Source: Podarcis filfolensis (lineage: Eukaryota). From it: a stretch of DNA of 64,000 nucleotides. Where the stretch lies: NCBI GenBank assembly GCA_964270895.1, contig OZ185445.1; one strand, 5' to 3'. Positions 19,301 through 62,805 of the stretch are shown here, piece after piece; the stretch's first letter is position 1; each line of letters starts with the position of its first letter. The position numbers and the translations under genes were made by a program. The notes under the pieces were generated by a model. That model was not told the origin of the DNA and did not search any database. It saw only the letters and a list, made by a program, of their open reading frames with translations.

Positions 19301-22300
19301 ATAAGTTGCATTTTCCCTGAAAATTTTGACTATGGGAAAATCCTGTCGGGATCTGAATAGTCTGAAATTATTTGGGGTCCTGTCATAATTGATTTGAGTA
19401 AATTTAATTTGCATACTTAATGGTGTAAAAGCTTCATTAAGTGTTCCCTTCAGAAGGTCTCTCTCCTCTCATGCGTACAATACATGCAATCAACTTGATT
19501 TATTATAGTCAACTTGGTTGACTATACAGTGGTACCTCTGGTTATGAACTTAATTTGTTCCGGATGTCTGTTCTTAACCTGAAACTGTTCTTAACCTGAG
19601 GTACCACTTTAGCTAATGGGGCCTCCCGCTGCCGATGCACAATTTCTGTTCTCGTCCTAGGGCAAAGTTCTTAACCCGAGGTACTACTTCTGGGTTAGCG
19701 GAGTTTGTAACCCAAAGTGTTTATAACCTGAGGTGTTTGTAACCCGACGTACCACTGTATTTCATCTTAGGAGATAAGAGAAATATATGAGCTTGGTGAG
19801 GAGCAGCTTTATATCTAATATGGTTGCATTATGCTAAATTTCTAAAAAATGTGTCTTGTTTTAAAATTTACTAGGTGGTGTATTAAGCTCAAAAGCAAAG
19901 CGTGCCAAGTGTTCTACCCATAAGCAAAGAGTAATCGTGATGTTATACAACAAAATTTGTGATATTGTTAGCAGTTTGGCTGAACTGTTGGAGATACAGC
20001 TTCTTACTGACACCACTATTCTTCAGGTAAGTTTGATCCATTTTATCCAGATTTCTCTTCCCCTTCTGCACACACACACAGGTCTAAAGTTCTTCTCCAG
20101 TGGATATTTTTTTTCTTTTACAAGCAGTAATGATGAAACTTCTTAAATTTAAGCTACTAGATTTTAAAATTTATTTTATAAGGCAACTTGGACAGTCAGT
20201 TATGAATATATATGATATGGAAAATATATGAATCTTTGAAGAACAATAACTACAAAATACCCAAGGAAAACAAATGTGTTTTTCTGTCTTAAATCTGAGG
20301 TCCTTTTCATCCCTGTTGTATGCTACTGCGACTAGTATGGGAATTGGAGAACACAATTAAATAGATGATGATCAGAGGTCTTTTTCTGTTGAAAAGATTT
20401 TATTTTCGTTTTTCAAGAATTATGAGAATTTATGTATATATTTCCTTTTCTGTTAATAGGTTTCTTCAATGGGGATAACACCTTTTTTTGTAGAAAATGT
20501 CAGTGAACTTCAGTTATGCGCCATCAAACTTGTCACTGCAGTAAGCACACCTTTTAACCAATATTTAATTGTACAGAAATGAATGACTTCTTGTGGTGTT
20601 GTTGGTTTTTAAAGGAACCTTTGTGGGGGTTGGCTTTCATGAATTACTTAATCTGGTCCTGATCATGTCCTCACTTCTAACTTTGCCTGACAACAGGTTC
20701 TTTTCCCCACTGAACTACTTCTCACTAAGCTTTGCCTCATAACCCAGATTGCTGCTGGTTTGTGAGAAAAGTATAACAACGCCACTGATCTTTCACGCCA
20801 TTATTTACCTTAATTGTTAGAAGGAAGGATATGCTGGCAGGAGCACTGCCGATCAAACAAATCTATTGCTTTGATAGTAGGCAACGGTTAAGGAATTATG
20901 TTACTGAGACCATGTCTGATGTGTCTATGATGGGACACTGACTTGATTTGGGGCATGCTGAGAGTAGCTGAAAACCTACAAGGAGATATCCCTGAGAGAG
21001 AAATCTCATTGCTATAGCAAAGGCAGATTGGTCTGATTTTTAATTTGTTTTGAAGCAGTGTAGATTAGGACAGCAGCTTTAAAGCAGCTACTGTATTTTT
21101 CCATGTATAACACGCCCCCATGTATAAGACGACCTCTATTTTGGGGGACTCCAATGTAAGAAAATGGGGGGGGATTGCCCAGGGTTGTTGAGTGTTTTTT
21201 TGGGGGGGGGTGTGCCAAAAATCACTAATCCGACTGACAAACGCTACAAATCGCAAGTGTCGCCAAAGCCACAACGCGTCTGCTCGCTCACCGACAGAAG
21301 CCGGCATTCGCACGCCCAATTGCCGCAGCGACAGCCAATCCACAGCAGCCCTTGCCGCAGCCACCAATCACCCACCAAATCGCTGCTGACAAGCTCCTGC
21401 TCGTGGCTGCAACCAATAGCCCGTCTCCCCTCTGCACTATGCATGTATAAGGTGACCCCAGATTTTTAACATTATTTTAGAGTAAAAAACCCTCTTCTTA
21501 TACACAAAAAAGTACGGTAGTTTGTCCAGCCTGATGGCTCAGTGTGTGAACAACTTTGTGAGCCTCACTAGGTTTGAAAGTTTACTTAGAAAACAATTTG
21601 AGTTGGTATTTTCAACTCTCTTAAATTAATGTTAGTAGTACCTTCTCCAAAATAATTTAAAACCATTTAATACATTTACATTAATACCACTTTTCTGGAT
21701 ACATACCTCTTGGCTATAGATATTGGTTGGTAATAGGAAAATAACTTTATGTTTTAATAAGTGTGTATGTGTGTTTGTAAAATAGTTTGTATTTTGGACA
21801 GCAAAATAAACAGGAAATGAAATACATATAATAACCATAATGAACTTTTTTCAGGTCTTCTCAAGATATGAAAAGCATAGGCAGTTGATATTAGAAGAAA
21901 TTTTCACTTCACTTGCAAGGTTACCAACCAGCAAAAGAAGTCTGAGGAACTTCAGGTAATGTACAGTGCTAATTTCTCTCTCCCTCTCCTCCCATCTTTA
22001 GAAGAAGTCTGTTTTTTTAGACATTTTATTGTTAACTGCCTGCTTCAAGGGGCATGCTAAGCCAAACTATGTCTGCATAACTGCAGGGTTGGGATTTGAA
22101 TCTAAGGTGCAATTTCAGATTTTGCATACGAGGTTTGTGGCTGTTGGGAGAGTAGAAAACACATCAAATGTCAGACGAGGGAAAACTCCTACCATCCTCT
22201 ACTTTTTGCTTGAATTTTTTCAATTTTTTGTTAATATGGCTTAACTGAATATTGGTTAACGAAATGCCAGTGAGGTTTAGTGGACTAAGACTAGGCAAGC

Positions 22301-25300
22301 ATCTATTCCAATCCCCACTCCACCATGAAACCCCCTGGGTGACCTGCGCCAGCTACTGTTACAGCCCAACCTACATCACAGATTTGATGAGATGATAAAA
22401 GAGGGGTGGGGTATAGCATAGGATCAAGCCATGCAAAGCATGCCACTCTGAATGCTATAAAGGAAGGGTGGGATAACATTGAAGGAAGGAGATATATGAG
22501 TGTGAGGCAGGAATGCTTAAATAAGGCATGGGGAAAGTTTGGCCTGCTGACCAAATTAGACCCAGCAGGTCTAGTTTGGCCTACAAGGCTGTTTTCCCCA
22601 TGCCATACACCTTCTGTCAATCTGTATCTACACCCAGTATTAGGTTTAGGACAGGTAAAGACATTACTGCAAAGGAACAACCAAAAGCTTTGAAGTGCAC
22701 TCCCAATTGTTCCATAGCACTTGGGAGCTGCTGATCCCTTCTGAAGGTGTGGATTGCTGTCATAGCTCATGGGTGGTGACTGCAATCTCCACTGGGGTTC
22801 CTGATCCAAAGCTTTCACATGCTGAAAGTGGGACTTGAATTCAGCATCAACTCCCAAGTCCTGCTTTTGTCAGGGGTCTTCCTCTACAACCTTGCTTGTA
22901 GTCAAGCTGGGCTGTAGAGCAGAAAAGTTCCCATCCCTGGCTTAAATCATGTAGCTTCAAAGTAAAGTGATACACTTCTGTTGGATCAACTTTTGTTCCA
23001 GAAATGTACTGCTCTTTGGGGGAAGCTTATTGCTTAGTTTGAATGCAAAACCACAACCCTATTGTGGGGATAAGATTTGAGATCATTGTAATAATTGAAG
23101 CCAATTGAAAAAAATGCCAAGGGTTTTAGTGTTTTCCACTGGGTTGATTTTTAACATTAGTAAAATAGGTTTGTGTTTTTCAACAGACTGAACAGCAGTG
23201 ACACTGATGGTGAACCTATGTATATTCAAATGGTGACTGCACTGGTGCTACAACTAATTCAGTGTGTTGTGCATCTACCATCAGGCGAGAAGGACTCTAA
23301 TTCTGAAGAGGAGTCAAATAAGAAGGTGAAAATGCTTTAGATTTATGTATTTAGCATATGTTCATATAGTTCTTACCGTTATCATCATAAATTCATGGAA
23401 TGCTGGGCCAGTGATGGGTCGGGCATGGAATGTGGGGAAAGAGCAAAGGGGGAAATGTCAGTTGGTGACACTTGAAGGAGAAGTTGAAAAGGCACTGAAG
23501 AGAGAGGAAGCAAGTAAACACAATATATCAGAGAGGAAGAAAAGTGAACCTGGGCAACAGAGCAGATAGACTGAAAGAACTGTGAGAAATGAATATTCAA
23601 CTAACTGTGTTAACTGAGGTTGAGTTATTTGATCACAGTGTTCATTGGCTGAGTGAATTATATTTTGTTTTTAAGATAATGAAGTAGCGTATTTACCGAG
23701 TCTAATGCACCATTGAATCTAATGAGCACCTCAATTTCCAGAACATTGAAACCAAAAAAAGTATTTCCTGGTGAATGTACTGTATTGGCCTGAATTTAAG
23801 CCTCACTTTCCCCCCCAAATTCCAACCATGAAAAGTTAAAGTGCAGCTTATATTCGCAACCTTACGGTATGCATCCAGGAGCGCAGGGCAAACAGCGCCC
23901 ACGTTGTGCGTAGTTCCCCGTCCTCTCCCCCAAGGCCGGGAAGGGAGAGAGCGAGGAAGGGGAAAGGCTGCCGGCAATGCAGCCCCCCCCCAGTATGTAG
24001 CCAGGAGCAGGGAGAAAGGGAGCAGCTTATATTTGGGTATTTGTTTTTTCAATTCTAAAGGTGCGGTTTATATTCGGGTCTGGCTTATATTCAGGCCAAT
24101 ATGGTAAATGTGCCATCAAATCTAATGTGCACCTTAATTTTCACAGTGTAATTTGTCCAAAAAAGGTGAGCGTTAGGTTCAAGTAAATACAGTATTGTTC
24201 ATGTTCATTAGACTCAAAAGTGATTGCAAGGTTGCATCTCCTTGTCCATAGTTGAGAAACGTATGTATTATACTTGCTGTTGTATAAATCACAACACACA
24301 TTCAGTAAGCAGGCGCTGTGTTCATTTTCAGGTGGACCAGGATGTCCTCATTACAAACTCATATGAAACAGCCATGAGAACAGCACAAAACTTCCTTTCC
24401 ATTTTTCTCAAGAAGTGAGTAGAATTCAACTGTTCATGTGTTATAAGTTTTATTTCTGTGTTGCTGTCCGTGCAGGGCTTTGTCTCCTTCCACTTGCTCA
24501 AGAGGCAGGGATCATGATAAATATTACCCTTACCTCCCTTATTAAGCTCTTAGAATTCTATAATTCTTTCTTTCTCCCTGGAGAATATCAGGAATTATCC
24601 CACTCTACCAAAGACCTATGGCATAAATTGGTTGTGTGCAGAGCTCTTAGAATAGACATCTAACGCACATCATTGTTCAGAAAATTTTATAGCCTTTTTG
24701 TTTCCTTCCACCCTCCCTGGTGAAAGAAGTATCTACTTCCACCATTGCTTAGTAGATCAAGGTTTGCATTCCTCTAGCATACAAAGCACAACACATCCCT
24801 GTTTCATTCATCATCATCGTACTTTCCATCAGGGCTGCAGTTCTCTCAGCATCCCTGTCATCAAATGCTCCAATGTCAGATCTGTTGGACAGTTATCACA
24901 GTCTGGATATCTGGACAAACAGAGAAAGGAACATTGGGACTTTCCTTCTCAAAATGTCCAGAGGCACTCAGAATCAACCCCAAACTCTCATTCAATGGCT
25001 GGCATTCAGTGGCAATAATCTATTTTCATGGACTACATGCAGACACTTCTGCATCATAAACAACCCTTCCCTCATAGTTTCTCTTTTCTTTGTCCCTCCC
25101 TCAATTCCGGATAACTCTTGACATTTATGAACTTGTCCATGGTGAAACTGGGAGGGGCTTGTTCCGGGGAGGCAAAAATGTGTGAGTGCTTTTATATTTA
25201 GCGCTCATTAACCTGGCATCAAAAGGATGTTAAGGCATACTTCTTCTCCCAGGTGTGATTATCAGGCTTATTACTGTTATATTGTTCCACATTTATGATT

Positions 25301-31300: not shown

Positions 31301-34300
31301 ATAGCTGCCCTATGTGTTGTAAGATGGATAACATGCTGATTCCCCCCCCCCCCAATATTAAACTTTTTCTTTCTTTTGCTTCTTCAGGATACTGGTATTA
31401 GTGTCAGAAAAAGAGTCATAAAGATTCTTAGGGATATCTGCATTGAACAACCAACATTTCCCAAAATTACAGAAATGTGTGTGAAAATGATTCGCAGAGT
31501 CAATGATGAAGAAGGCATTAAGGTACAGTAAACAAATCATTTACTACAGGGGTGAGCAGCCCTGAGCAGGTGAGCAGGTGAGCAGGATTAAACACTGTCC
31601 TCATACCCATCAGCTGACATCCTGCCTTAGCAGCATGCCATGACTTCAGCAAATAACAGGATTGTGCAGCCAGGACAGCGGGACTGAGCAGGGATTAAAG
31701 CACTTCTCAAAAGCAGTGTTTGGATCTCCTGTGAGCAGTGGGTGGTTGCTGCTTCAGCAGGGTGGAGGTTGCTTGACTGAGGCTATATTGGTGCTGATTT
31801 CCCTTCCATTCAAGTTGAACTGCTCGTGATGTGTGTCTAGTGGGTTGTGCTTTTTGTAGACTCTTGTTGGTAGTTTAGGGAATGTGGAAAGCTACTTTTA
31901 CCTAATCAATATCTATCCATTTTATTTCCAGAAACTGGTAAATGAGACATTCCAGAAGCTGTGGTTTACTCCAACCCCCCATAATGACAAAGAAGCAATG
32001 ACCAGGAAAATATTGAACATTACAGATGTGGTATGAGAGTGCTATTGTTCCCATTGACTAATGTATCAATTGTGATAAATTGAGTTGTATCTGACGTGTT
32101 CTAATTTTCTTATTGTCCTTGACATGATTGGTGATTATACTCTGTCCCTAAGTGTTGGTTTATTCTTTAAAGTCTGCCAGTTCTCATACTGTAGTGCTCA
32201 AGCAAATGTTGCAGTTTGTAGCACAATACTCTGGGTTTTTAGTGAGGTTCCCTATAACTGATCAACTATTCTAGTATGGCATGTATGTAGGATTGAAGTT
32301 GATTAAGTAAACATAAAGTTAAATGGATTCGAATATTTTCAAGAGAGTTTAACAATACTCCTGCAGTACAGTGGTACCTTGAGTTACAAATGCCTCAGGT
32401 TACAAATGCCTCAGGTTACAAACTCCGCTAACCTGAAAGAGTTACTTCGAGTTGCCCCACGATGAGAACGGAAATCGTGTGCCAGCGGCACAGCGGCAGC
32501 AAGAGGCCCCATTAGCGGAAGCACGCCTATAGTTAAGAACAGTTTCAGGTTAAGAATGGACCTCCGGAATGAATTAAGTTCGTAACTAGAGGTACTACTG
32601 TACTTACAATATTTTTATAGTTTTCATTTATATAAAGCAGATTTCGTGTTTATTTGAAATTGTTTCCAAAAACATATTTGGTCTGCATTGGACTTACATT
32701 GATGATTAATGAACTTAGATGGTGTTTCAAATATTTGAGATGCTATTCAGAAACCTATTAGTACTATGAATGAGCATGTCACTTTACAGAGCCTAACAGG
32801 AAAGAGGTCCCTGCTTCAAAAATACTGTAGGTTAGACAGAGTGAAGGGACAGTAACATAAAGCAATAGTCATAAGGTTAGAAAAAACTTACATTTGATAT
32901 ATTACTATTGTGGGTGGTGCTGTAGTCTAAACCACTGAGCCTCTTGGGCTTGCCAATAGAAGGTCGGCAGCTTGAATCTGCACGACAGGATGAGCTCCCG
33001 TTGCTCTCTCCCAGCTTCTGCCAACCCAGCAGTTCTGAAGCACACTAGTGCAATTAGATAAATAGGTACCACTGCGGTGGGAAGGTAAATGGAGTTTACG
33101 TGCGTTCTGGCTTCCTTCATGGTGTTCTGTTGTGCCAGAAGCGGTTTAGTCATGCTGGCCACATGACCCGGAAAGCTGTCTGTGGACAAACACTGACTCC
33201 CTTGGCCTGAAGCGAGATGAAAGCCACACCCCATAGTCACCTTTGACTGGACTTAACTGTCCAGGAGCCCTTTACCTTTTCTTATTGATGTTTTAATATT
33301 AGCATAGGTTACTGTTGAAAAGTTACATGCAAGTGTATTTTCATTTTCTCTTAGGTCGCAGCTTGTAGAGATACAGGGTATGATTGGTTTGAACAGCTTC
33401 TTCAAAATGTAAGTAACTGTTCAGATAACTTATTTTTTTCAAAAATGGAACTCCCTCAGTTTGAGGTTTATACTGAATGGGGTGGGCTGTGGAATGGTAA
33501 TTTGAAGATGAAGGTGGATTCTTGAGGTTGTTTCCAGAAATAGGAGCAAGACCTTTTTGGGAAGCCATTTTGGAGAGGGGGTTGCCAGGAGGGTGTGAGG
33601 AAAGTCACCCTCCTCCAACCCCATTACACGCACTTTTCTTTTGTTCCAGTGCACTGCTTTCAAATTATTGGCCTATTGACAGTTGCTTCCCATGTGTGGC
33701 AGAAATATAGTTCTTTGCTTTCTTATGAAGATGGCTTGTATATTCTCAGAATCTATCCATGAGTATCAACATTGTCCATATTGTGTATCTTTGTAGTTGC
33801 TAAAATCTGAAGAAGATGCTTCATATAAGCCTGTAAAGAAAGCCTGTACTCAGCTTGTGGATAATTTGGTTGAACACATTCTGAAGTATGAAGAATCTCT
33901 GGCAGGTAAAACAGTTATTTGCATTCCATTCATAAGCTTTGTAGAATTTTTTGTGGGTACCAGAGCTCCAGGTGGAATTCAAATTACTCTTCCACATGAC
34001 TGTACGAATTATTTTAGAAGTGTGTTCATATATAAACCTCATGTAGTGAGGTGTGTGTGCCTCCAACACTGTTGGCTTTCAGGAGGAATTGGAGAACATT
34101 CCTGTCTACCCAGGCATTTGGTGGCTAAAGAATACTGTAAGGGCCATCCTGAGATCACTGGATGAAATGTTTTTACCTGTAACTTTTTAGATATTTTTAA
34201 CTGTAACTGTTTTAGAATGCTTTTTAAAATTTATTGTGGATGTGTTTGCTGTCTTGGTCCCCTTAGAGGGGAAGAGTGGGATATAAATTTAGTAAATAAA

Positions 34301-43300: not shown

Positions 43301-46300
43301 AAGGAAGCCATCATCTGATGAAGAGAGTGAGAGTGAAAGTAACAGTGAAAGTGACAGCGACAGTGAGGAGGAAGTTCACAAACCCCGAAAGTTGCGAAAA
43401 CGTGCAGAGTCTGATTCAGATACTGATGAAGAGAATGATATAAATGCTGTCATGAAATGTTTGCCAGACAATTCAGCTCCTCTCATTGAATTTGCAAATG
43501 TTTCCCAGGGCATATTGTTGCTGTTGATGCTAAAACAGCATTTGAAGAACCTCTGTGGATTTTCTGACAGGTGAGGAGCATTCAAGTTTTGCTTACTTTA
43601 TCTCAGGAGTGGGGAAGTTTTTCAGTTTGCATTCTTCTGCGAGCAACTTCTAGGGTGTGCATGGCAGTGATGGGTGGGGCTGGAAGCAAACTTGGAGCAA
43701 GAGATGTGACTCTTACAATAGGCTACATTCCAGCCATGCGAAAGTCAGATCTTTCCTCTTGTACACCCAGCCCATCTCTCCAACCTTTATTCAGGCAAGC
43801 AAGAACTATTATCACAGTTCAGGTGCATTTTAGCCAAGCAAAAGCTCTCAAGGAAGGCATGCAGTAAGGCTGGCGAGGAGTGTGGCTGAGGAGAGGCCTG
43901 GGGACTGGAAGGCCACATTTTGCTGGTGGGCTTGAGGTTTCCTACATCTGTTTTATCTGATCATTCCCTGTGATCACATTATTGAGGTTTTGTTACGGAT
44001 TGAACTCAAAACTTGGGTGAATTCTGCATAATGCAGATGCATCTAGCAAAACCTAGTGCCATAATGTTTGTTTTATATAACACTAAGAATTTTGACCTAA
44101 GGGACTCAGAAGAATTGCTTATGGATTCTACTTTCAAAGGATGTGGGGAAATCTTACTAACTTCAAGCATTCGTTTTGTTTTCTTGATAACAGTAAAATT
44201 CAGAAATACTCTCCCTCTGAATCGGCAAAAGTATACGATAAAACAATAAACAGGAAGGCAGGAATTCATTTCCATCCAAAACAGACGCTAGACTTCCTTC
44301 GAAGTGATATGGCTCATTCCAAGCTCACAGATGAAGTGAAGAGGAATATAGTCAAACAGTACTTAGATGTAAGTATTGAGAGCCTGCACAATTTTACTGC
44401 CTATCAACTTCATTATAAAAACGCTTGAACTCTGTTCTGAAATACTTTTAAGTTTTTGTTATTTAGAAGGTGAAATATGAAGAGCAGTGGCTGCAGGCTG
44501 AAATTGTTTTTTTTCTTCAGAGGTGAGGAATGGAGTATGCTGACTTCTTCCACTGCAAGTTGCCCTCTTCAGTTTGCTTGCTGAAGAAATGTGTATCTAA
44601 TGCACAGAATTAGGCAAATTAGAGGCTGTTGGATGAGCTGCAGGTTGCATCATTTTTTCATTGACAGTGCAATGTCATTGGGTTGGGCTGTCACAGTGAG
44701 CTTGAGATGGTCCATGCAAATGTAGGCTCAAGCTACATGTGACATCACAGAATTTGCCACTGAGCACAAGCTTTTGCTTTCACACATTACCAACATACCC
44801 TAGTGTGCTGTTGTCCCGATCTGGGTTGGGGGGGCCCCATGCCTTCAATCTGCATTATGGGCTGCAGGGGAGTCTCTGTTCGTTCAACTGGGAGCTTTTT
44901 ACCTAATGCAAATTTCATGCATGGGCCTGGCCCAGAAATGGACCACAGAGCAGGCAAAGAGTCAAAAGACTCCCTCTTGGGTTTGAGTTGGTGTGCTAGC
45001 AAAATTTCCCCACAATTGCCAAAAGTTAACATTGAGGCTCTAATATGTACGAGATCTAAAACCTTGCCCCCTTAAGGCCTATTAAGGAAAGAGAACAGTC
45101 CTTGCTTTCTCCAAGAAAAGATGTGTCACATGCTACTAAATTGATAGTGTACTCCGCAAATTGTCTTAAGGTTACTCCCATAAGGCTTGCGCACCACCTT
45201 CCTTCCTTTTTTTCTTTTCTGTTTTCATAACTCATTTTAAGGTGGCGCCTAATCTTCTTTCCAATATCCTTTCTTAGTTCAAACTTCTCATGGAACACTT
45301 GGATCCTGATGAAGAAGAGGAAGATGGAGAAGTGTCAGCTAGCACAAATGCTCGCAACAAAGCTATTACCTCGCTGCTCGGAGGAGGCAGCCCTAAAAAC
45401 AATGCAGCTGAGACAGAGGATGATGAGAGTGATGGGGAGGATAGAGGAGGAGGCACTTCAGGGGTGAGGCGGAGGAGGAGTCAACGTATTTCGCAGCGTA
45501 TTACGTAAAATGATTTTATGTGCTTATAAATGTCAGTCTATAATAAAATGTACACTGAGTAATGTAATCAATATGGAAAAAAAACCATTTTGTAGATAGA
45601 AATTCTTAACCGTTTATACACCTTTTTGTAGAAAGTTCTAACAAAAACAATAAAAAACATAGAAGAGATTTTATCTAGCATAAAGTTTAATTTTCCTTTG
45701 GAATGTACTGTGTGTATCCTTTTTATTGTTGCCAAGTTTTTATGTAGCTTTATGATTCATTTGTACATATAATTTTATATATCAATAAGAGTTAAAAGAC
45801 ACGGGTACAATTTAATATGTGATTTTGCAAGGATGTTAACCCCTTGGCGCTGGCGGTCGCGGTGCGTCTCATTGCCGGCAATGGAATGTGTGCCGGGAAA
45901 TCCCAACTCCCGGCGTCAAGGGATTAAAAGCAATAAAAGCAATAANNNNNNNNNNNNNNNNNNNNNNNNNNNNNNNNNNNNNNNNNNNNNNNNNNNNNNN
46001 NNNNNNNNNNNNNNNNNNNNNNNNNNNNNNNNNNNNNNNNNNNNNNNNNNNNNNNNNNNNNNNNNNNNNNNNNNNNNNNNNNNNNNNNNNNNNNNNNNNN
46101 NNNNNNNNNNNNNNNNNNNNNNNNNNNNNNNNNNNNNNNNNNNNNNNNNNNNNNNNNNNNNNNNNNNNNNNNNNNNNNNNNNNNNNNNNNNNNNNNNNNN
46201 NNNNNNNNNNNNNNNNNNNNNNNNNNNNNNNNNNNNNNNNNNNNNNNNNNNNNNNNNNNNNNNNNNNNNNNNNNNNNNNNNNNNNNNNNNNNNNNNNNNN

Positions 46301-46368
46301 NNNNNNNNNNNNNNNNNNNNNNNACTTTACGATCGTTGTATGCCGCCAAGGATGGAACTTCCAGCTAA
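5877..46368 (+). CDS. NIPBL: NIPBL (Nipped-B-like cohesin loader) gene span, 5'-partial: exons ~10-47; upstream exons lie outside the window
   Basis: 38 exons spliced by hand give one frame with hallmark peptides (PETPKQK repeats, KPVVVLQKL, HEAT-repeat region, LYAAKDGTSS*); exon lengths mostly match recalled human exons (183,72,90,104,87,232,152,81,101,139...). Confidence 0.98.
10241..10423 (+). CDS. NIPBL: NIPBL exon 11 (183 nt)
   Basis: gatag|GTAGCATAGAT...GAAA|gtaagt; GSIDQSVLKELPPELLAEIES...KPKYAEISSDDDND. Confidence 0.97.
10859..11010. repeat. Perfect palindrome (73-bp arms, 6-nt spacer), Penelope-like element remnant
   Basis: 10859-10931 is the exact reverse complement of 10938-11010; CCAGTAGCACCTTAAAGACCAAC...CACACTTCTTCAGATAC resembles recalled squamate Penelope termini. 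Confidence 0.85.
11067..11202. mobile_element. hAT-type MITE (136 bp)
   Basis: TIRs ...CATAGGCAAACTCGGC / GCCGAGTTTGCCTATG...; perfect 8-bp TSD ACTTAGAC at 11059-11066 and 11203-11210. Confidence 0.88.
12705..12908 (+). CDS. NIPBL: NIPBL exon 12 (204 nt)
   Basis: ctag|CTTCTCGG...GAGG|gtaatt; SRKRHKKDREDDKAWQYEE...YSPPPSLSE. Confidence 0.96.
13723..13794 (+). CDS. NIPBL: NIPBL exon 13 (72 nt)
   Basis: taag|TGGCTAGA...GAAG|gtaagg; VARKMKKREKQKKRKAYEPKLTPE. Confidence 0.96.
13900..13989 (+). CDS. NIPBL: NIPBL exon 14 (90 nt)
   Basis: attag|AAATGATG...TTTG|gtaaat; EMMDSSTFKRFSASVENILDNLEDMDYTAF. Confidence 0.96.
15230..15333 (+). CDS. NIPBL: NIPBL exon 15 (104 nt)
   Basis: ctttag|GTGATGAT...GACAGG|gtaagt; GDDDEIPQEFLLGKHQLSELGSESAKIKAMGIMDR. 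Confidence 0.96.
15984..16070 (+). CDS. NIPBL: NIPBL exon 16 (87 nt)
   Basis: ttttag|CTTTCAAC...AACCAT|gtaagt; LSTEKTVKVLNILEKNIQDGSKLSTLLNH. Confidence 0.96.
17286..17471. mobile_element. hAT (Charlie-like) MITE
   Basis: TIRs CAGGGGTAGTCAACC / GGTTGACAACCCCTG; 8-bp TSD GCCTAGAG/GCCTAAAG. Confidence 0.85.
18194..18425 (+). CDS. NIPBL: NIPBL exon 17 (232 nt)
   Basis: ctacag|AATAATGAC...CATGGTG|gttagt; NNDTEDEERLWRDLIMERVTKSADAC...YRLDPHG. Confidence 0.96.
18501..18570 (-). mobile_element. L2-like LINE 3' tail fragment with (CCT)n
   Basis: Reverse complement of the GAGTGGCTGGGGAAACCCAGCCAGATGGGC tail also seen at ~63800-63830. Confidence 0.75.
18930..19170 (-). mobile_element. CR1-like LINE/SINE 3' fragment
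   Basis: AGAACAT...GCTGGAACAGACCAGTGGTTCATCTCGTCCAGCATCCTG; related copy in opposite orientation at ~61215-61350. Confidence 0.6.
19527..19757 (+). mobile_element. Tc1/mariner (Tigger/pogo-like) MITE, 231 bp
   Basis: TIRs CAGTGGTAC... / ...GTACCACTG; TA TSD. Confidence 0.88.
19875..20026 (+). CDS. NIPBL: NIPBL exon 18 (152 nt)
   Basis: actag|GTGGTGTA...CTTCAG|gtaagt; GGVLSSKAKRAKCSTHKQRVIVMLYNK...DTTILQ. Confidence 0.96.
20460..20540 (+). CDS. NIPBL: NIPBL exon 19 (81 nt)
   Basis: aatag|GTTTCTTC...ACTGCA|gtaagc; VSSMGITPFFVENVSELQLCAIKLVTA. Confidence 0.96.
21091..21517. mobile_element. Tc1/mariner-type non-autonomous DNA transposon
   Basis: Imperfect TIRs CTGTATTTTTCCATGTATAA / TTATACACAAAAAAGTACGG; TA on both flanks; GC-rich core. 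Confidence 0.8.
21855..21955 (+). CDS. NIPBL: NIPBL exon 20 (101 nt)
   Basis: ttcag|GTCTTCTC...TTCAG|gtaatg; VFSRYEKHRQLILEEIFTSLARLPTSKRSLRNFR. Confidence 0.96.
23187..23325 (+). CDS. NIPBL: NIPBL exon 21 (139 nt)
   Basis: caacag|ACTGAAC...AAGAAG|gtgaaa; LNSSDTDGEPMYIQMVTALVLQLIQCVVHLP. Confidence 0.96.
23687..24192. mobile_element. Tc1/mariner-type non-autonomous DNA transposon
   Basis: GCGTATTTACCGAGTCTAATGC ... GCGTTAGGTTCAAGTAAATACAG; TA flanks; internal repeats AATCTAATG.GCACC and TTATATTC. Confidence 0.78.
24332..24414 (+). CDS. NIPBL: NIPBL exon 22 (83 nt)
   Basis: tttcag|GTGGACC...AAGAA|gtgagt; VDQDVLITNSYETAMRTAQNFLSIFLK. Confidence 0.96.
25415..25547 (+). CDS. NIPBL: NIPBL exon 23 (133 nt)
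   Basis: aacag|ATGTGG...CTGTTG|gtaaga; CGSKQGEEDYRPLFENFVQDLLSTVNKPEWPAAELLLSLLGRLL. Confidence 0.96.
26133..26276 (+). CDS. NIPBL: NIPBL exon 24 (144 nt)
   Basis: cttag|GTCCATC...AAACAG|gtttga; VHQFSNKSTEMALRVASLDYLGTVAARLRKD. Confidence 0.96.
26839..26928 (+). CDS. NIPBL: NIPBL exon 25 (90 nt)
   Basis: ttacag|GTCTCAG...CTAGTG|gtatgt; VSGGDDEIQQLQKALLDYLEENTETDASLV. Confidence 0.96.
28692..28906 (+). CDS. NIPBL: NIPBL exon 26 (215 nt)
   Basis: caccag|TTTTCTCGG...TTAAG|gtgagt; FSRKFYIAQWFRDTTMETEKAMK. Confidence 0.96.
29023..29125 (+). CDS. NIPBL: NIPBL exon 27 (103 nt)
   Basis: ttacag|GATGAAT...ACACAG|gtaaac; MNSDTVDYEDACLIVRYLASMRPFAQSFDIYLTQ. Confidence 0.96.
30692..30790 (+). CDS. NIPBL: NIPBL exon 28 (99 nt)
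   Basis: attag|ATTCTG...GCCAGG|gtaaac; ILRVLGENAIAVRTKAMKCLSEVVAVDPSILAR. Confidence 0.96.
30892..31038 (+). CDS. NIPBL: NIPBL exon 29 (147 nt)
   Basis: ttatag|CTTGAC...ATACTG|gtatgg; LDMQRGVHGRLMDNSTSVREAAVELLGRF. Confidence 0.96.
31388..31522 (+). CDS. NIPBL: NIPBL exon 30 (135 nt)
   Basis: cttcag|GATACT...ATTAAG|gtacag; DTGISVRKRVIKILRDICIEQP. Confidence 0.96.
31932..32030 (+). CDS. NIPBL: NIPBL exon 31 (99 nt)
   Basis: ttccag|AAACTG...GATGTG|gtatga; KLVNETFQKLWFTPTPHNDKEAMTRKILNITDV. Confidence 0.96.
32369..32600 (-). mobile_element. Tc1/mariner MITE, same family as 19527-19757, opposite orientation
   Basis: TIRs CAGTGGTACC / GGTACTACTG; TA TSD; reverse complement aligns by eye to the 19527 copy. 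Confidence 0.88.
32911..33279 (+). mobile_element. Sauria SINE
   Basis: tRNA-like head, GCAGTTC.GAAGCAC...GATAAATAGGTACC core, CCTTTACCTTT tail; paralogue at 49870. Confidence 0.9.
33355..33408 (+). CDS. NIPBL: NIPBL exon 32 (54 nt)
   Basis: tcttag|GTCGCA...CAAAAT|gtaagt; VAACRDTGYDWFEQLLQN. Confidence 0.96.
33797..33905 (+). CDS. NIPBL: NIPBL exon 33 (109 nt)
   Basis: ttgtag|TTGCTA...GGCAG|gtaaaa; LLKSEEDASYKPVKKACTQLVDNLVEHILKYEESLA. Confidence 0.96.
35003..35139 (+). CDS. NIPBL: NIPBL exon 34 (137 nt)
   Basis: tttcag|ATTCCG...TGCAGT|gtaagt; DSDNKGVNSSCLVACITTLFLFSKIRPQLMVKH. Confidence 0.96.
36027..36167 (+). CDS. NIPBL: NIPBL exon 35 (141 nt)
   Basis: ctgtag|AGTCAA...ATGACA|gtaagg; SQNDFMVICNVAKILELVVPLMEHPSETFL. 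Confidence 0.96.
36485..36578 (+). CDS. NIPBL: NIPBL exon 36 (94 nt)
   Basis: ttctag|GTAGTG...ACTATG|gtaagt; VVQHCVSCLGAVVNKVTQNYKFVWACFNRYY. Confidence 0.96.
36678..36832 (+). CDS. NIPBL: NIPBL exon 37 (155 nt)
   Basis: ttgcag|GTGCAC...AGCAAG|gtaaac; GALSKLKSQHQEDPNS...RHFDFDQEDFKGNSK. Confidence 0.96.
37001..37091 (+). CDS. NIPBL: NIPBL exon 38 (91 nt)
   Basis: aaatag|GTTAAC...GTCTAG|gtaaga; VNIKDKVLELLMYFTKHSDEEVQTKAIIGL. Confidence 0.96.
37926..38099 (+). CDS. NIPBL: NIPBL exon 39 (174 nt)
   Basis: tttcag|GCTTTG...GAGAAT|gtgagt; GFAFIQHPGLMFEQEVKTLYNSILSDK. Confidence 0.96.
39400..39590 (+). CDS. NIPBL: NIPBL exon 40 (191 nt)
   Basis: tcatag|GGAAAA...GTTCAG|gtatgc; WKKVAKQEDLKEMGDISSGMSSSIMQLYLKQVLEAFF. 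Confidence 0.96.
40111..40218 (+). CDS. NIPBL: NIPBL exon 41 (108 nt)
   Basis: tttcag|TGTGTG...ATTCAT|gtatgt; CVPYLIAMGTDPEPSMRNKADQQLVEIDKKYAGFIH. Confidence 0.96.
40865..41065 (+). CDS. NIPBL: NIPBL exon 42 (201 nt)
   Basis: cttcag|ATGAAA...ACAGCT|gtgagt; MKAVAGMKMSYQVQQAIN...LFDDTA. Confidence 0.96.
41250..41379. mobile_element. hAT-type MITE related to 11067-11202
   Basis: CAGCCGTCCCCAA / TTGGGGGAGGCTG ends; CCCTCCAGATGTTTT...GACTACAA.TCCCATCAT core; degenerate TSD. Confidence 0.8.
42123..42269 (+). CDS. NIPBL: NIPBL exon 43 (147 nt)
   Basis: ccacag|AAAACG...AAGGAG|gtaagt; KTEVNQLLYIADNLACFPYQTQEEPLFIMHHIDI. Confidence 0.96.
43278..43570 (+). CDS. NIPBL: NIPBL exon 44 (293 nt)
   Basis: tttcag|TCTATG...TGACAG|gtgagg; acidic Ser/Glu/Asp tract then MKCLPDNSAPLIEFANVSQGILLLLMLKQHLKNLCGFSD. 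Confidence 0.96.
44194..44368 (+). CDS. NIPBL: NIPBL exon 45 (175 nt)
   Basis: taacag|TAAAAT...TTAGAT|gtaagt; KIQKYSPSESAKVYDK...FHPKQTLDFL. Confidence 0.96.
45278..45463 (+). CDS. NIPBL: NIPBL exon 46 (186 nt, spliced to exon 47 in isoform A)
   Basis: tcttag|TTCAAA...TCAGGG|gtgagg; FKLLMEHLDPDEEEEDGEV...GGGTSG. Confidence 0.95.
45464..45508 (+). CDS. NIPBL: NIPBL isoform B C-terminal extension (read-through of the exon 46 donor)
   Basis: In-frame VRRRRSQRISQRIT-TAA, matching the recalled human isoform B tail. Confidence 0.92.
   Translation: MRRRRSQRISQRIT
45509..45945 (+). promoter_or_regulatory. NIPBL isoform B 3'UTR with poly(A) signals
   Basis: AU-rich; AATAAA at 45542-45547 and 45932-45937; Pumilio-type TGTACATA at 45762-45769. 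Confidence 0.7.
45836..45927 (+). other. TTAA-flanked inverted-repeat element / predicted RNA multi-hairpin (piggyBac-MITE-like)
   Basis: 18-nt arms TTAACCCCTTGGCGCTGG / CCGGCGTCAAGGGATTAA (2 G-U, 1 mismatch); internal perfect palindrome CATTGCCGGCAATG at 45870-45883. Confidence 0.65.
45946..46323. other. N-gap, 378 nt (covers most of NIPBL exon 47)
   Basis: Run of n. Confidence 0.99.
46324..46368 (+). CDS. NIPBL: NIPBL exon 47 visible 3' end (isoform A C-terminus); the rest lies in the N-gap
   Basis: ACT TTA CGA TCG TTG TAT GCC GCC AAG GAT GGA ACT TCC AGC TAA = TLRSLYAAKDGTSS*. Confidence 0.93.
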   Translation, partial: TLRSLYAAKDGTSS

Positions 46369-59900: not shown

Positions 59901-62805
59901 TGGTTAAAAGCAACCACAGAGGACCTGTGATTCTGTTTGGAGCAGCAGCCCTGGGGGAGTGGGTTAACCCTTTACCTATCAAGGCGAATACAGTGGTACC
60001 TCGGTTTAAGAACAGCCCTGTTGACGAACTATTTGGTTTACAAAGTCCGCAAAACTGGAATCCAAACGGTGGAAGCGCGCCTCGGTTTCAGAACAGATTT
60101 GGTTTAAGAACGGACTTCGGGAACAGATTAAGTTCGTAAACCGAGGTACCACTGTAACTGCTTTCAAAGGGAGAAAAGACTGCTTTCAAAGACTGAGAAA
60201 ATTAAATGGGAAAGTTAAATCCTCTCCTCCACAAGCACATTCTCAGCAGATGTGTGCTGGGGAGTCCATTCGCTCTTAATAACAACAACATATGAAATAC
60301 AAATACAAAATTTGCTCAAAAATTTTTTTCTAAGGTCTTCACAGAAGGCAAAGACTAAATATTAACTTCTTAGCTATCTTTGAAAAACAAATGACAATAA
60401 AAGAGGGTACGTAAGTGAAAAATGTGGTTCATCAACATTTTTTTGCCAATAAAAATCAACATGAACTTTATGTCCATATTAACTGGGGGGGGCAGTCTCA
60501 TACTATAGTCGTATATGGATTCTAAATCAGTAAAATAAAGTTTCTTTTCTAAAGGAAGATACAATGTGCACATATAAAAAAATCAACATGGACAGACTGA
60601 TGGCACACCTGCAATAGACGCAGAAGCAGGAGTGATTGGTTGATTTTTACCAGATTCAAAAACGATTTCTTCTGAGATGGTTTGCATATCCTCACAAGGT
60701 TTAACAACTTGATTGATAAAATAAAGAAAAGCCAAGATGAATCAATAGCAGGAAAGCACATTCTATTCTTTATTAAAATACAGGGATTTCTGAGGATATT
60801 TTGAATAATTTGGCCTTAGGAGAGCAAGTGAATTACTTCAAGATTAATTTAAGATAAAAAGAAATTGAAGATAAATTTAAAGATACCTGGTTGGATCCAG
60901 AGGAGTCCCTTCACGGACTGTCAGTTCAATAGATCTGCCTACTCATTTGCCAATTCTTCCTCCACCCTACAGCAGGGTTGGCTAACCTGTAGGGCATGTT
61001 TGGCTTCCCAAGCAGTTTATGGTGTTCCTCAATTTATTTTGTTAAAAGGCAATGCTGAGAAACTTTTCAAAAAAAATTTTCACCAGCAGGTGGCGCTGTT
61101 GAACACCACACCTAATAGGCTGAACCCCATCCTCAGATCTCATAAGCAAGGAGGGGACATTATAGCGCCACATTTTATTTTTCCAAAGGGCCCTTCTCCC
61201 TCTGGTGTGGTGCCCTTATTAGAATGTTTCAGAGATTCTTGGGAAACAGGAAGAAAATTGGCTACCGTGACAACAGGATGCTGGACTAGATTGGCCCCTG
61301 GTCTGATCCAGCAGGTTAGTCTTGCATTCCTGAGTTCCTGTTTCCTCTCCTTCTAACAACGGCACCACAGATTTGTGCATGCACTGACATATGGTCCTTG
61401 AACGGGCAGCAAACACTTAAATGTGGCCAATCTTCAAAAAAGGTTAGTCCCCTGCAGCACCTCCCACACTATTCTCCAACACCCAGAGCAAATTTTTAGT
61501 CATCCCAGGAGACTTCAGGAAAAGTGGAACCCACCAGAATGAACACATTTGAAAAACAAACAAGCAAGCAAAAAAACCAACAATTCATACAAACAGACTG
61601 AAAGGAAGCACACCTGTTAGAGACGCAGAAGCAGTGGTGATTGGTTGATTTTTATCAGGTTCAGAAACTATTTCATCTGAGACAGTTTGTACATCTTGGT
61701 GTGATTTATTAACTTGATTGGTAAAGAAAAAAGTAAAATCAAGATCAATCAACAGAAAGGCAAAACAAAACATTCTGTTACTTATTGAAGGAGGGTTATT
61801 TCTGGTGGAAGGATTGAAGGACTTGGTCTGAAGAGGACAAATTTCATACACAATGCTTAACATTGCAAAAATTATTGATTGCCATTTCTTCCACAATTCT
61901 TAGGCTGTAATCCTAAACATACCCAGAAGTCACACTGAACTCACTGTGACTTAGTTCTGAGTAGACATGCATAGGATTGGGCTGCTAGGAGATATTCTAA
62001 TATAAATTAACTTAGAGGAAAGCAATTTAGCTGCAAATGCTAAAAAAGCAACAACATAAAAAATTCCGGCAGATTATTTTACCAGGATCTGTATTTGTAG
62101 AGGCATCTTGAAGATCCGCAATTCTTTTTCTTACAGAAGCTAAGTAATGTAGTCCTGCTGAAGAAATAACAGCCTCTGGGTCTAAGAGGGAGGAATACAT
62201 AATTACTATCCACATTAAAATTAGTAGGGGAAGAAAACTATTTCAATAGTTTTTGCTAAATTCATTGTCTCAGCTGTACAATTAAAAATGAAGAAAACAT
62301 AATTCATATTCAATAAAGAGGATTAGAGAAACATTTTTGCCTATGTAGGTGCGTTAGGTGAATCCTGCTCTTATATCCTGCTCTTATATCCATTATAAAT
62401 ATAATCACATTTCTACAGATAGGAAACCGATGCCAGGAAATAGTGATTTATTTCAAAATGAATCTACAAAAGCAGTGAATGCATGTAAAATTATGACTGA
62501 CAATTCATTCCAAAGTTCTTTGTATCTACTAGATCATGCTAAATATCACTGTCATTCAAGATAAATACCACGGGTTGTGTTCCATCTTACTCCTATTCAG
62601 AACAGACCAATAGAAATTAACGGGTATGACTAAATTCATTCATTTCAATGGATCTACTCTATGTAGGACTTAGTTGGATACAACCTCATATTTAAATAGA
62701 ATGGACAGGTCATAACTGGATCTTCCATTTTTAAGTTTTGTTGAAATACTCACTCAGTAAGGAGCCACCATCATTGAGGTCATAGCTGAATTCTGTTTGA
62801 TTATC
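50817..62805 (-). CDS. CPLANE1: CPLANE1 (C5orf42/JBTS17) gene span, 3' portion (17 exons); 5' part lies beyond the window end
   Basis: 17 minus-strand exons chain in frame. Peptides resemble human CPLANE1: [79 protein letters not shown]. Convergent synteny with NIPBL as in human. Confidence 0.92.
51524..51666 (-). CDS. CPLANE1: CPLANE1 penultimate exon (GC donor; alternative GT donor at 51518)
   Basis: ttgcag|CTTCTG...TTCAAG|gcaagg; SDEQRK...[24 protein letters not shown]. Confidence 0.85.
52577..52699 (-). CDS. CPLANE1: CPLANE1 exon (123 nt, phase 1-1)
   Basis: gctcaag|GCCGAC...GTCAAG|gtttgt; [41 protein letters not shown]; called from splice sites and phase fit. Confidence 0.7.
52828..52925 (-). 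CDS. CPLANE1: CPLANE1 exon (98 nt, phase 2-1)
   Basis: ttgtag|AAGTTG...GGAAAG|gtaaga; [32 protein letters not shown]. Confidence 0.75.
53520..53678 (-). CDS. CPLANE1: CPLANE1 exon (159 nt)
   Basis: cttcag|GGCCTT...TGGAGG|gtaaag; [29 protein letters not shown]. Confidence 0.88.
54389..54450 (-). CDS. CPLANE1: CPLANE1 exon (62 nt)
   Basis: gtatag|CCACTT...AAATAA|gtaagt; [20 protein letters not shown]. Confidence 0.85.
55318..55474 (-). CDS. CPLANE1: CPLANE1 exon (157 nt)
   Basis: ctccag|TGTAGT...AAAATG|gtaaga; [46 protein letters not shown]. Confidence 0.9.
56060..56220 (+). mobile_element. Degenerate MIR-like SINE
   Basis: CTACAAGGTAGGTTAG...GGCTGAGTGGAGATTTGAACC; similar degenerate copies at ~22270-22400 and ~22700-22860. 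Confidence 0.5.
56245..56368 (-). CDS. CPLANE1: CPLANE1 exon (124 nt)
   Basis: ttttcag|AAGATC...ATCCAG|gtaatt; [34 protein letters not shown]. Confidence 0.88.
56585..56651. repeat. 24-bp tandem repeat, ~2.8 copies
   Basis: CCAGTTCTCCAGACAAACCCATGC x2 plus partial copy. Confidence 0.92.
57602..57760 (-). CDS. CPLANE1: CPLANE1 exon (159 nt)
   Basis: gaaacag|AGCGCT...CTTCTG|gtacca; [20 protein letters not shown]...KKSSS; phase 1-1 fit. Confidence 0.72.
58410..58434 (-). CDS. CPLANE1: CPLANE1 25-nt microexon (phase 0-1)
   Basis: ctctccttttttttcag|GTTGTGGACACTGTAGAAGATGTAG|gtacag; required to connect phases of flanking exons. Confidence 0.75.
58542..58786 (-). CDS. CPLANE1: CPLANE1 exon (245 nt)
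   Basis: ttcaaag|GAGATC...AAACTG|gtaggt; ...[32 protein letters not shown]. Confidence 0.87.
58990..59185 (-). CDS. CPLANE1: CPLANE1 exon (196 nt)
   Basis: gtttag|ACTGGA...CAGAAG|gtgaac; [21 protein letters not shown]...[17 protein letters not shown]. Confidence 0.88.
59326..59444 (-). CDS. CPLANE1: CPLANE1 exon (119 nt)
   Basis: cacacag|AGCTTT...GATTTG|gtaagt; [23 protein letters not shown]. Confidence 0.87.
59991..60154. mobile_element. Tc1/mariner MITE, 164 bp
   Basis: TIRs CAGTGGTACCTCGGTTTA / TAAACCGAGGTACCACTG; TA TSD. Confidence 0.88.
60609..60707 (-). CDS. CPLANE1: CPLANE1 99-nt exon, duplicate copy A
   Basis: aatcaag|TTGTTA...TTGCAG|gtgtgc; [33 protein letters not shown]. Confidence 0.78.
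61083..61096 (+). promoter_or_regulatory. Candidate CTCF core motif
   Basis: CCAGCAGGTGGCGC matches the CTCF consensus. Confidence 0.45.
61614..61712 (-). CDS. CPLANE1: CPLANE1 99-nt exon, duplicate copy B
   Basis: aatcaag|TTAATA...TAACAG|gtgtgc; [33 protein letters not shown]. Confidence 0.78.
62083..62181 (-). CDS. CPLANE1: CPLANE1 exon (99 nt)
   Basis: ctcttag|ACCCAG...ATCCTG|gtaaaa; [32 protein letters not shown]. Confidence 0.87.
62573..62685. mobile_element. Short palindromic MITE-like repeat
   Basis: GGTTGTGTTCC ... GGATACAACC ends with self-complementary interior; similar elements near 57920-58020 and 61903-61985. Confidence 0.5.
62754..62805 (-). CDS. CPLANE1: CPLANE1 exon (52 nt)
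   Basis: ctgtcag|GATAAT...TACTGA|gtgagt; [17 protein letters not shown]; phase 0-1 fit. Confidence 0.7.

Follow-up and report, generated by a model that had tools for sequence, protein, structure and literature searches.

A near-invariant, hairpin-forming CpG-rich element next to the isoform-B polyadenylation signal of NIPBL, a candidate modulator of the choice between polyadenylation and splicing

The principal gene of Cornelia de Lange syndrome, NIPBL, is acutely dosage-sensitive, a drop of 30% being enough to cause disease, and its isoforms A and B differ in their C-termini. Which signals might set the balance between these two ends of the transcript is the question raised by a stretch of 64,000 nucleotides from Podarcis filfolensis (contig OZ185445.1 of assembly GCA_964270895.1), which is called the window in what follows. 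Near the 3' end of the gene, within an AT-rich sequence that is both the body of intron 46 and the 3'-untranslated region (UTR) of isoform B, the window contains a 92-nt element rich in GC and CpG that can fold into a hairpin and ends a few nucleotides before the candidate polyadenylation [poly(A)] signal of isoform B. As set out below, this element has remained nearly the same in birds and in a lemur, and we tentatively propose that it acts as a cis-acting RNA hairpin which tunes recognition of the isoform-B poly(A) site against the acceptor of exon 47.

The element and its parts are located as follows.

45836..45927, + strand: GC- and CpG-rich hairpin-forming element of 92 nt, delimited by sequence, fold and composition
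45836..45853, + strand: left arm of the outer stem, TTAA included, invariant in 11 of 11 sequences, with pair probabilities of 0.95-1.0 for 13 of its pairs
45870..45883, unstranded: perfect 14-nt palindrome forming the apical hairpin, recognised by its self-reverse match, pair probability about 0.69
45893..45913, + strand: alternative inner hairpin CCGGGA/TCCCGG, overlapping the right arm by 4 nt, ensemble probability about 0.04
45910..45927, + strand: right arm of the outer stem, TTAA included, invariant in 11 of 11 sequences
45923..45928, + strand: ATTAAA variant hexamer, overlapping the right arm and partly buried in the stem base, invariant in 11 of 11 sequences
45932..45937, + strand: AATAAA, candidate isoform-B poly(A) signal, starting 5 nt past the end of the element, invariant in 11 of 11 sequences

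With TTAA at both of its ends (45836-45839 and 45924-45927), the element is framed by arms of 18 nt that are 83% complementary, forming 15 Watson-Crick pairs, two G-U pairs and one C.A mismatch on the + strand. Its GC content is 0.60 and its nine CpG give an observed/expected (o/e) ratio of 1.10, as compared to a GC content of 0.25 in the UTR upstream (45509-45835) and a CpG o/e of 0.22 in the window. Beyond the AATAAA, an AATAA at 45941-45945 stands right before a run of N that starts at 45946. A preliminary description of this DNA had already listed the TTAA ends, the 18-nt arms, the 14-nt palindrome, the competing hairpin and the AATAAA, and each of them is found where it had been placed; the second hexamer, ATTAAA, was absent from that description. 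Its title had the hairpin lie between the poly(A) signal and the acceptor of exon 47, which needs correction, as the hairpin sits upstream of the signal, between it and the stop codon of isoform B (45506-45508).

How old and how constrained is the element? The conservation figures refer to a set of 11 orthologous sequences consisting of the window, a 9.3-kb metagenome contig (L003) with the 3' end of NIPBL, eight bird assemblies (L008-L015), and the lemur Propithecus coquereli (L007). L003 was found by scanning metagenome contigs with a 23-mer of the left arm, and the assemblies L007-L015 were found with the exon-47 open reading frame (ORF) of L003 as query. Since the alignment of L003 to a bird assembly runs through the introns, at 87% identity, this contig is avian. 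Between the window and L003, exons alone align, at 84-93%, and introns do not, and therefore the two genomes are deeply diverged. Over the element together with both hexamers (110 nt) they are 100% identical, and the isoform-B UTR aligns along its full length. Identity of the element to that of the window is 100% in L003, L009, L010, and L015, 98.9% in L011-L014 (one change), 97.8% in the lemur (one CpG to CpA change and a 1-nt deletion), and 95.7% in L008 (four changes), where a G to A replacement affects the central CCGG of the 14-nt palindrome. None of the 11 sequences departs from the others in either arm, either TTAA, the ATTAAA, or the AATAAA, and the nine CpG are kept (eight in the lemur) despite the low CpG o/e of the window. 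Each orthologous locus in the relatives has a single copy of the element.

The surrounding isoform-B 3'UTR is 80-88% identical, its upstream part being 84% identical between the window and birds and 80.5% between the window and the lemur. When the bird L010 is compared with the lemur, identities are 92.7% for exon 46, 100% for the isoform-B extension (45 nt, 5 CpG), 86.4% for the UTR upstream of the element, 97.8% for the element, 93.4% from the signal to the acceptor, and 97.8% for exon 47 (366 nt). The element is as conserved as the best coding exon, despite nine hypermutable CpGs. Presence in sauropsids and a primate places its origin before the bird-mammal split, and conservation beyond the lineage of the window, on which the preliminary description had made its proposal depend, is borne out by identities of 95.7-100%. 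Judged by these alignments, the element is ancient, strongly selected and nearly unchanged since before birds and mammals separated, and is not a recent insertion.

At the few loci compared outside the amniotes, the element is, as far as alignments indicate, absent or unrecognisable. Neither the isoform-B extension nor the element was found at the teleost loci L006 and L018, where intron 46 measures about 200 nt and about 50 nt, respectively, or at the shark locus L017, and in all three the site is unalignable; L004 and L005 are too short to show presence or absence of the element. In the teleosts, the very short introns 46 (L006 2263-2480, L018 555-640) read through into unrelated peptides, and therefore an amniote-type isoform B is not encoded there. 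Both NIPBL isoforms are called 'conserved in vertebrates' in the literature, which contrasts with the teleost loci L006 and L018. A further locus with a tetrapod-like exon 47 (L019) shares the 5' block of the isoform-B UTR (L019 246-351; 72% over 107 nt, E 2e-7). An apparent match of L019 to the element, with what looked like compensatory CpG decay, was rejected as not significant, as 182 of 2000 global and 154 of 300 local shuffles scored as well, and the L019 segment folds no better than shuffles (z 0.06). With a shared 5' UTR block and no recognisable element in L019, the hairpin may be younger than part of this intron/UTR.

Other matches were set aside. The metagenome contigs L001 and L002 are GC-rich and bacterial and have the 23-mer alone in common with the element, which we attribute to chance; viral contigs scanned for the element gave 0 matches, and a protein word search with the frame spanning the element gave no candidate. 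In the elephant shrew (L016), a model annotated as 'nipped-B-like protein-like' (2001-2849) is a single uninterrupted ORF of 282 codons without intron 46 or element; we regard it as a probable processed retrocopy derived from the 3' end of isoform A, and as uninformative on the element. Three further entries stand outside the set of 11 sequences, namely P0001, a spliced read-through transcript of the mammalian type, P0080, an ORF of 104 amino acids that mouse and probably many mammals share (174 contigs), and P0091, flagged as a contaminant of a penguin assembly.

What kind of transcript end does the element belong to? The gene context on the 5' side of the element and beyond it comprises the following features.

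45278..45463, + strand: NIPBL exon 46, common to isoforms A and B, identified by the acceptor AG at 45276-45277 and an open frame
45464..45508, + strand: isoform-B read-through, beginning with the GTGAGG donor of intron 46 and consisting of 14 codons and TAA (stop at 45506-45508), identified by sequence and reading frame
45509..45835, + strand: AT-rich upstream portion of the isoform-B 3'UTR and at the same time body of intron 46, with eight UGUA
45946..46323, + strand: run of N of 378 nt, predicted from the spacing in relatives to include the region of isoform-B cleavage, the acceptor of exon 47 (about 45999-46000) and the greater part of the exon-47 coding sequence

The exon-46 protein of the window is identical to that of exon 46 in the bird P0066 and to the exon-46 ORF of L003. 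A usable donor (GTGAGG at 45464) stands within an exon that also reads through to a stop, the arrangement that defines a composite terminal exon. Published isoform B has 2697 amino acids, those up to residue 2683 being the same as in isoform A, and its end is encoded by an expanded exon 46 (PMC5372497). The donor and the 14-codon read-through of the window match it, so that the assignment of this locus to the isoform A/B choice, already made in the preliminary description, stands. In every human tissue tested, A exceeds B, with parallel tissue patterns, and variants limited to exon 47, which affect isoform A only, lead to milder disease (PMC5372497). The 45-nt read-through with its 14 codons, stop and five CpG is 100% identical at the nucleotide level between the bird L010 (2175-2219) and the lemur L007 (2178-2222), and the flanking exon 46 is 92.7% identical. 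Constraint on this read-through therefore seems, on this comparison, to act on the RNA or DNA sequence of the donor region as well as on the peptide.

The geometry of the two competing signals can be observed in the relatives. The end of the element is separated from the AG of the exon-47 acceptor by 72 nt in the nine birds and by 75 nt in the lemur. Exon 47 has a coding length of 366 nt, and pyrimidines make up 75% of the final 40 nt of intron 46, which is about 540 nt long. Following the AATAAA there are a CA 12 nt downstream, a GU/U-rich tract, a branch-like GTAAC motif about 30 nt before the AG, the pyrimidine tract, and the AG. In birds and lemur, the downstream element of the isoform-B poly(A) site shares about 70 nt with the branch and pyrimidine region of the isoform-A acceptor. 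An exon 47 of 366 nt, assumed earlier by analogy to human, and the resulting placement of the predicted isoform-B cleavage amid the acceptor region hold in the nine birds and the lemur. As the run of N in the window (378 nt) corresponds to an interval of 376 nt in L003, the spacing in relatives predicts an acceptor near 46000 in the window, within this run. The poly(A) signal is of the canonical type with auxiliary elements, the AATAAA and the upstream UGUA motifs being present in the window and the CA and the GU/U-rich tract being taken from relatives. UGUA is enriched in the isoform-B UTR (45520-45835), with 8 motifs observed for an expectation of 2.45, a count of 8 being attained by 7 of 2000 shuffles. 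The bird has 7 such motifs and the lemur 6, for the most part spaced from the element much as in the window, and the nearest UGUA lies 74-78 nt before the stem.

With respect to the fold, the sense RNA reaches a minimum free energy (MFE) of -42.0 kcal/mol (z -3.26), which none of 200 shuffles equalled. Pair probabilities are 0.95-1.0 for the outer stem and 0.3-0.68 for the TTAA pairs at its base. A conserved, predicted stem-loop just upstream of a hexamer recalls the polyadenylation-inhibitory element (PIE) type of regulator. The predicted sense-strand fold has six G-U pairs, the antisense equivalents of which would be C.A mismatches. Among the seven variable columns of the 11 sequences, five are unpaired, one turns a U-A pair into U-G, and the remaining one disrupts a pair; the A to G change shared by L011-L014 keeps the closing pair of the inner hairpin as G-U. 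This pattern mildly favours the predicted fold; it is a post hoc argument, the structure having been predicted from the same 11 sequences. The idea that the RNA might switch between two states, raised in the preliminary description, fares only partly well: forcing the inner hairpin yields -40.5 kcal/mol against an MFE of -41.3 (a cost of 0.8) and is thermodynamically possible, but the rearrangement concerns the interior, nine outer pairs persisting in both states. Searches of Rfam with the element gave no family, the best match being a CRISPR repeat (E 1.6, 19 bits against a gathering score of 42), and a tRNA scan with ARAGORN gave 0 genes.

Regarding the presence of the element in RNA, words from the locus occur at full share in sequencing runs of the source organism and at shares of 0.75-0.87 in those of two relatives. 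Runs of other organisms that are recorded as RNA, from three studies and with poly(A) RNA-seq registered as chicken gut among them, contained 0.19-0.25 of the words sampled. For comparison, the bird L003 has 27% of the 31-mers of 45290-45945 in common with the window, and 14% once those touching the element and the signal are removed. These shares suggest that contigs from the RNA runs include at least part of the element, which would fit isoform-B mRNA and a retained intron alike.

Taken together, these data lead us to the proposal that a composite terminal exon carries a conserved RNA hairpin, acting in cis, which would tune recognition of the isoform-B poly(A) site against the exon-47 acceptor, a proposal that we doubt slightly more than we believe. 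Exon 46 would serve as composite terminal exon, the GTGAGG donor being spliced to exon 47 to give isoform A or, alternatively, the transcript being cleaved and polyadenylated within the intron of about 540 nt to give isoform B. The site used for the latter would be complete and canonical, with upstream UGUA, AAUAAA, a CA 12 nt downstream, and a GU/U-rich tract. As about 70 nt are shared, the cleavage machinery and the 3'-splice-site machinery would therefore compete for one and the same stretch of RNA. Folded in vivo on the sense RNA, the 92-nt hairpin, with its stem base 4 nt from AAUAAA, would set the efficiency with which the isoform-B site is recognised, be it by enhancing or by attenuating it. 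It might do so as a platform for protein binding; alternatively, the fold might reduce the distance between hexamer and upstream UGUA block by 92 nt and at the same time bury the weaker AUUAAA.

Several observations weigh against this proposal. The antisense RNA folds almost as well as the sense RNA (-38.0 kcal/mol, z -3.17). RNAalifold on the 11 amniote sequences returns 31 pairs with a covariation term of 0.01 and 0 compensatory changes; as there is almost no variation among these sequences, covariation is uninformative and RNA structure neither proven nor refuted. Loops are as invariant as stems, and therefore selection acts on the sequence itself, beyond pairing, which a DNA-level role or pure recognition by a protein would explain equally well. 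The whole isoform-B UTR is highly conserved, so that the element is a peak within a constrained region rather than an isolated island. Also, the acceptor region is masked in the window and its geometry is transferred from relatives, and the argument from word shares for presence in RNA is indirect.

Two explanations compete with the proposed role at the poly(A) site. According to the first, the element would act post-transcriptionally in mature isoform-B mRNA, as a protein-binding hairpin of the 3'UTR that serves stability, localisation, or translation, without any role in splicing or polyadenylation. Its location at the very end of the isoform-B 3'UTR, the equal invariance of loops and stems, as expected if both sequence and shape are recognised, and the 80-88% conservation of the UTR as a whole would all agree with such a function. 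The fixed distance of 4 nt between the stem base and AAUAAA, however, and the 93.4% identity between bird and lemur of the block that reaches through the acceptor point to 3'-end processing or splicing, and we regard a purely post-transcriptional element as unlikely, if far from negligible.

The second explanation places the function in the DNA, where the element might be a site for a transcription factor or for chromatin, or a small island free of methylation that serves as intragenic enhancer, insulator, or Pol II pause site, and the RNA fold would be a by-product of palindromy. That nine CpG are kept in a CpG-depleted genome, that a perfect 14-nt palindrome is present, that both strands fold about equally, and that unpaired positions are invariant would be in line with it, and NIPBL is listed among genes rich in ultraconserved elements (PMC13513235). 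On the other hand, the arms differ at three positions, two of them G-U-compatible on the sense strand only, and these differences are invariant in the 11 sequences instead of having been perfected to a full palindrome; also, the placement relative to poly(A) signal and acceptor is exact. A function in the DNA thus seems improbable to us, about as much so as one in the mature mRNA. Presumed resemblances to motifs for CTCF, RFX, E2F, and NF-kB, noticed by eye, are not used as evidence.

A different matter is where the element came from, and the answer would be compatible with any of the functional readings, the proposed tuning of the isoform-B poly(A) site included. The preliminary description saw a piggyBac signature in it, and a miniature inverted-repeat transposable element (MITE) of the piggyBac type might have inserted at a TTAA in the amniote ancestor and have been recruited afterwards. 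TTAA does occur on both sides, on the left as TTAA|CCCC, the inverted termini start with CCCC and end with GGGA, the composition differs sharply from that of the flanks, and element and isoform-B extension are absent from the teleost and shark loci. But TTAA is itself palindromic, common at 25% GC, and here merely lengthens the stem. On the right, the sequence is GGGA|TTAA instead of GGG|TTAA, with the C.A mismatch at the first position inside the TTAA. No second copy was detected in the 64-kb window at up to 3 mismatches. An empty site was not seen at the loci compared, L019 sharing the 5' UTR block and having no significant similarity to the element. The TTAA ends stand as described; a piggyBac origin is neither supported nor refuted by these observations, and we consider it quite improbable.

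A bolder extension of the proposed tuning would make the hairpin a dosage-feedback sensor, bound by a trans-acting factor that shifts the A:B ratio and thereby buffers active NIPBL, and exapted once before the bird-mammal split, possibly from a transposon inserting at TTAA. The factor might be NIPBL itself, the N- and C-terminal regions of which have been reported to bind RNA (bioRxiv 10.1101/658492), or a partner of cohesin or Integrator. Autoregulation via the element is pure conjecture, and we give the sensor as a whole a very small chance of being correct. Smaller still is the chance of a small-RNA precursor, miRNA-like or other, released from intron 46 or from the isoform-B UTR, for although a strongly conserved, imperfect hairpin of 92 nt with about 31 pairs would be an obvious starting point, the element matches no Rfam family and no tRNA, and its arms, with a bulge of 8 nt, are asymmetric. 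A-to-I editing at the C.A mismatch (A45923, the first base of ATTAAA) was ranked low, as a G as 5' neighbour is disfavoured for this reaction and literature linking NIPBL to conserved editing was not found. Finally, a young, lineage-specific MITE without function, suggested by the intact CpGs (o/e 1.1 against 0.22), is refuted by orthologs at the same place in nine birds and the lemur.

Elsewhere in the window, two more local CpG-dense patches with 8 CpG per 92 nt are situated in NIPBL introns (21202-21360 and 23847-24000). Furthermore, CpG-rich interspersed repeats with GTTAAGAAC-type internal repeats occur at 32426-32590 and 60045-60200, the second one also with a GGTACCACTGTA-type tail; they resemble squamate SINEs of the Sauria type. 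Along with the bird-like protein of exon 46 and introns that do not align, these repeats point to a sauropsid other than a bird.

Is any of this known already? In the library searched for NIPBL polyadenylation, ultraconservation, and editing, there was no paper whose title or abstract deals with the element or with the A:B choice, and in PMC11870849, PMC13420535, PMC13513235, and PMC5898910 NIPBL is mentioned without discussion of either. Public conservation tracks very likely show the block; no role seems to have been ascribed to it so far. What the present analysis adds is a precisely delimited candidate element of 92 nt, held nearly unchanged since before the bird-mammal split, hypermutable CpGs included, at a place where in relatives the isoform-B poly(A) site and the exon-47 acceptor physically overlap. 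If the element tunes the A:B ratio or total output, it would be a place to look for non-coding pathogenic variants and would offer a handle on isoform balance, and if it acts on DNA instead, a compact conserved palindrome would be worth a footprint.

In comparison with known systems, piggyBac-derived MITEs, represented in mammals by the MER85/MER75 type, resemble the NIPBL element in their TTAA flanks, short C/G-rich inverted termini, and size of about 100 nt. In contrast, the NIPBL element is a single orthologous copy under extreme constraint, and its right terminus is not GGG|TTAA. With ultraconserved elements it shares near-identity across more than 300 My and residence in a developmental chromatin gene that is reported to be rich in such elements (PMC13513235). 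The classical ones, however, extend over at least 200 nt with 100% identity between human, mouse, and rat, whereas the NIPBL block measures 110 nt and was compared in the window, birds, and lemur.

Among systems that act at mRNA 3' ends, the Rex-response element of HTLV-1 and structured mammalian 3' ends use folds to shorten the distance between the elements of a poly(A) site. Similarly, a stable fold between hexamer and UGUA, the latter 74-78 nt before the stem, would bring the two 92 nt closer in NIPBL, although known folds of this type are usually located between hexamer and cleavage site and the NIPBL fold lies upstream of the hexamer. The PIE of the U1A mRNA is a conserved structured element just upstream of a poly(A) signal and is autoregulatory. 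A conserved stem-loop, predicted in the case of NIPBL, a few nucleotides upstream of the hexamer and a dosage-controlled gene are features common to both; the PIE, however, acts on a terminal 3'UTR, whereas the NIPBL site would compete with a downstream acceptor, and the likeness is one of position and predicted fold, none of sequence being expected. The textbook case of a composite terminal exon with an intronic poly(A) switch is the immunoglobulin mu gene with its secreted and membrane forms. As in that gene, a donor lies within a potential terminal exon of NIPBL, a poly(A) site follows in the next intron, cleavage and splicing would compete, and the resulting proteins differ in their C-termini. 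What sets NIPBL apart is a hairpin that abuts the hexamer and is 98-100% conserved over the bird-mammal split, for which the IgM paradigm offers no counterpart, and an intron of only about 540 nt, about 70 nt of which contain, in relatives, both the poly(A) downstream element and the branch/pyrimidine tract.

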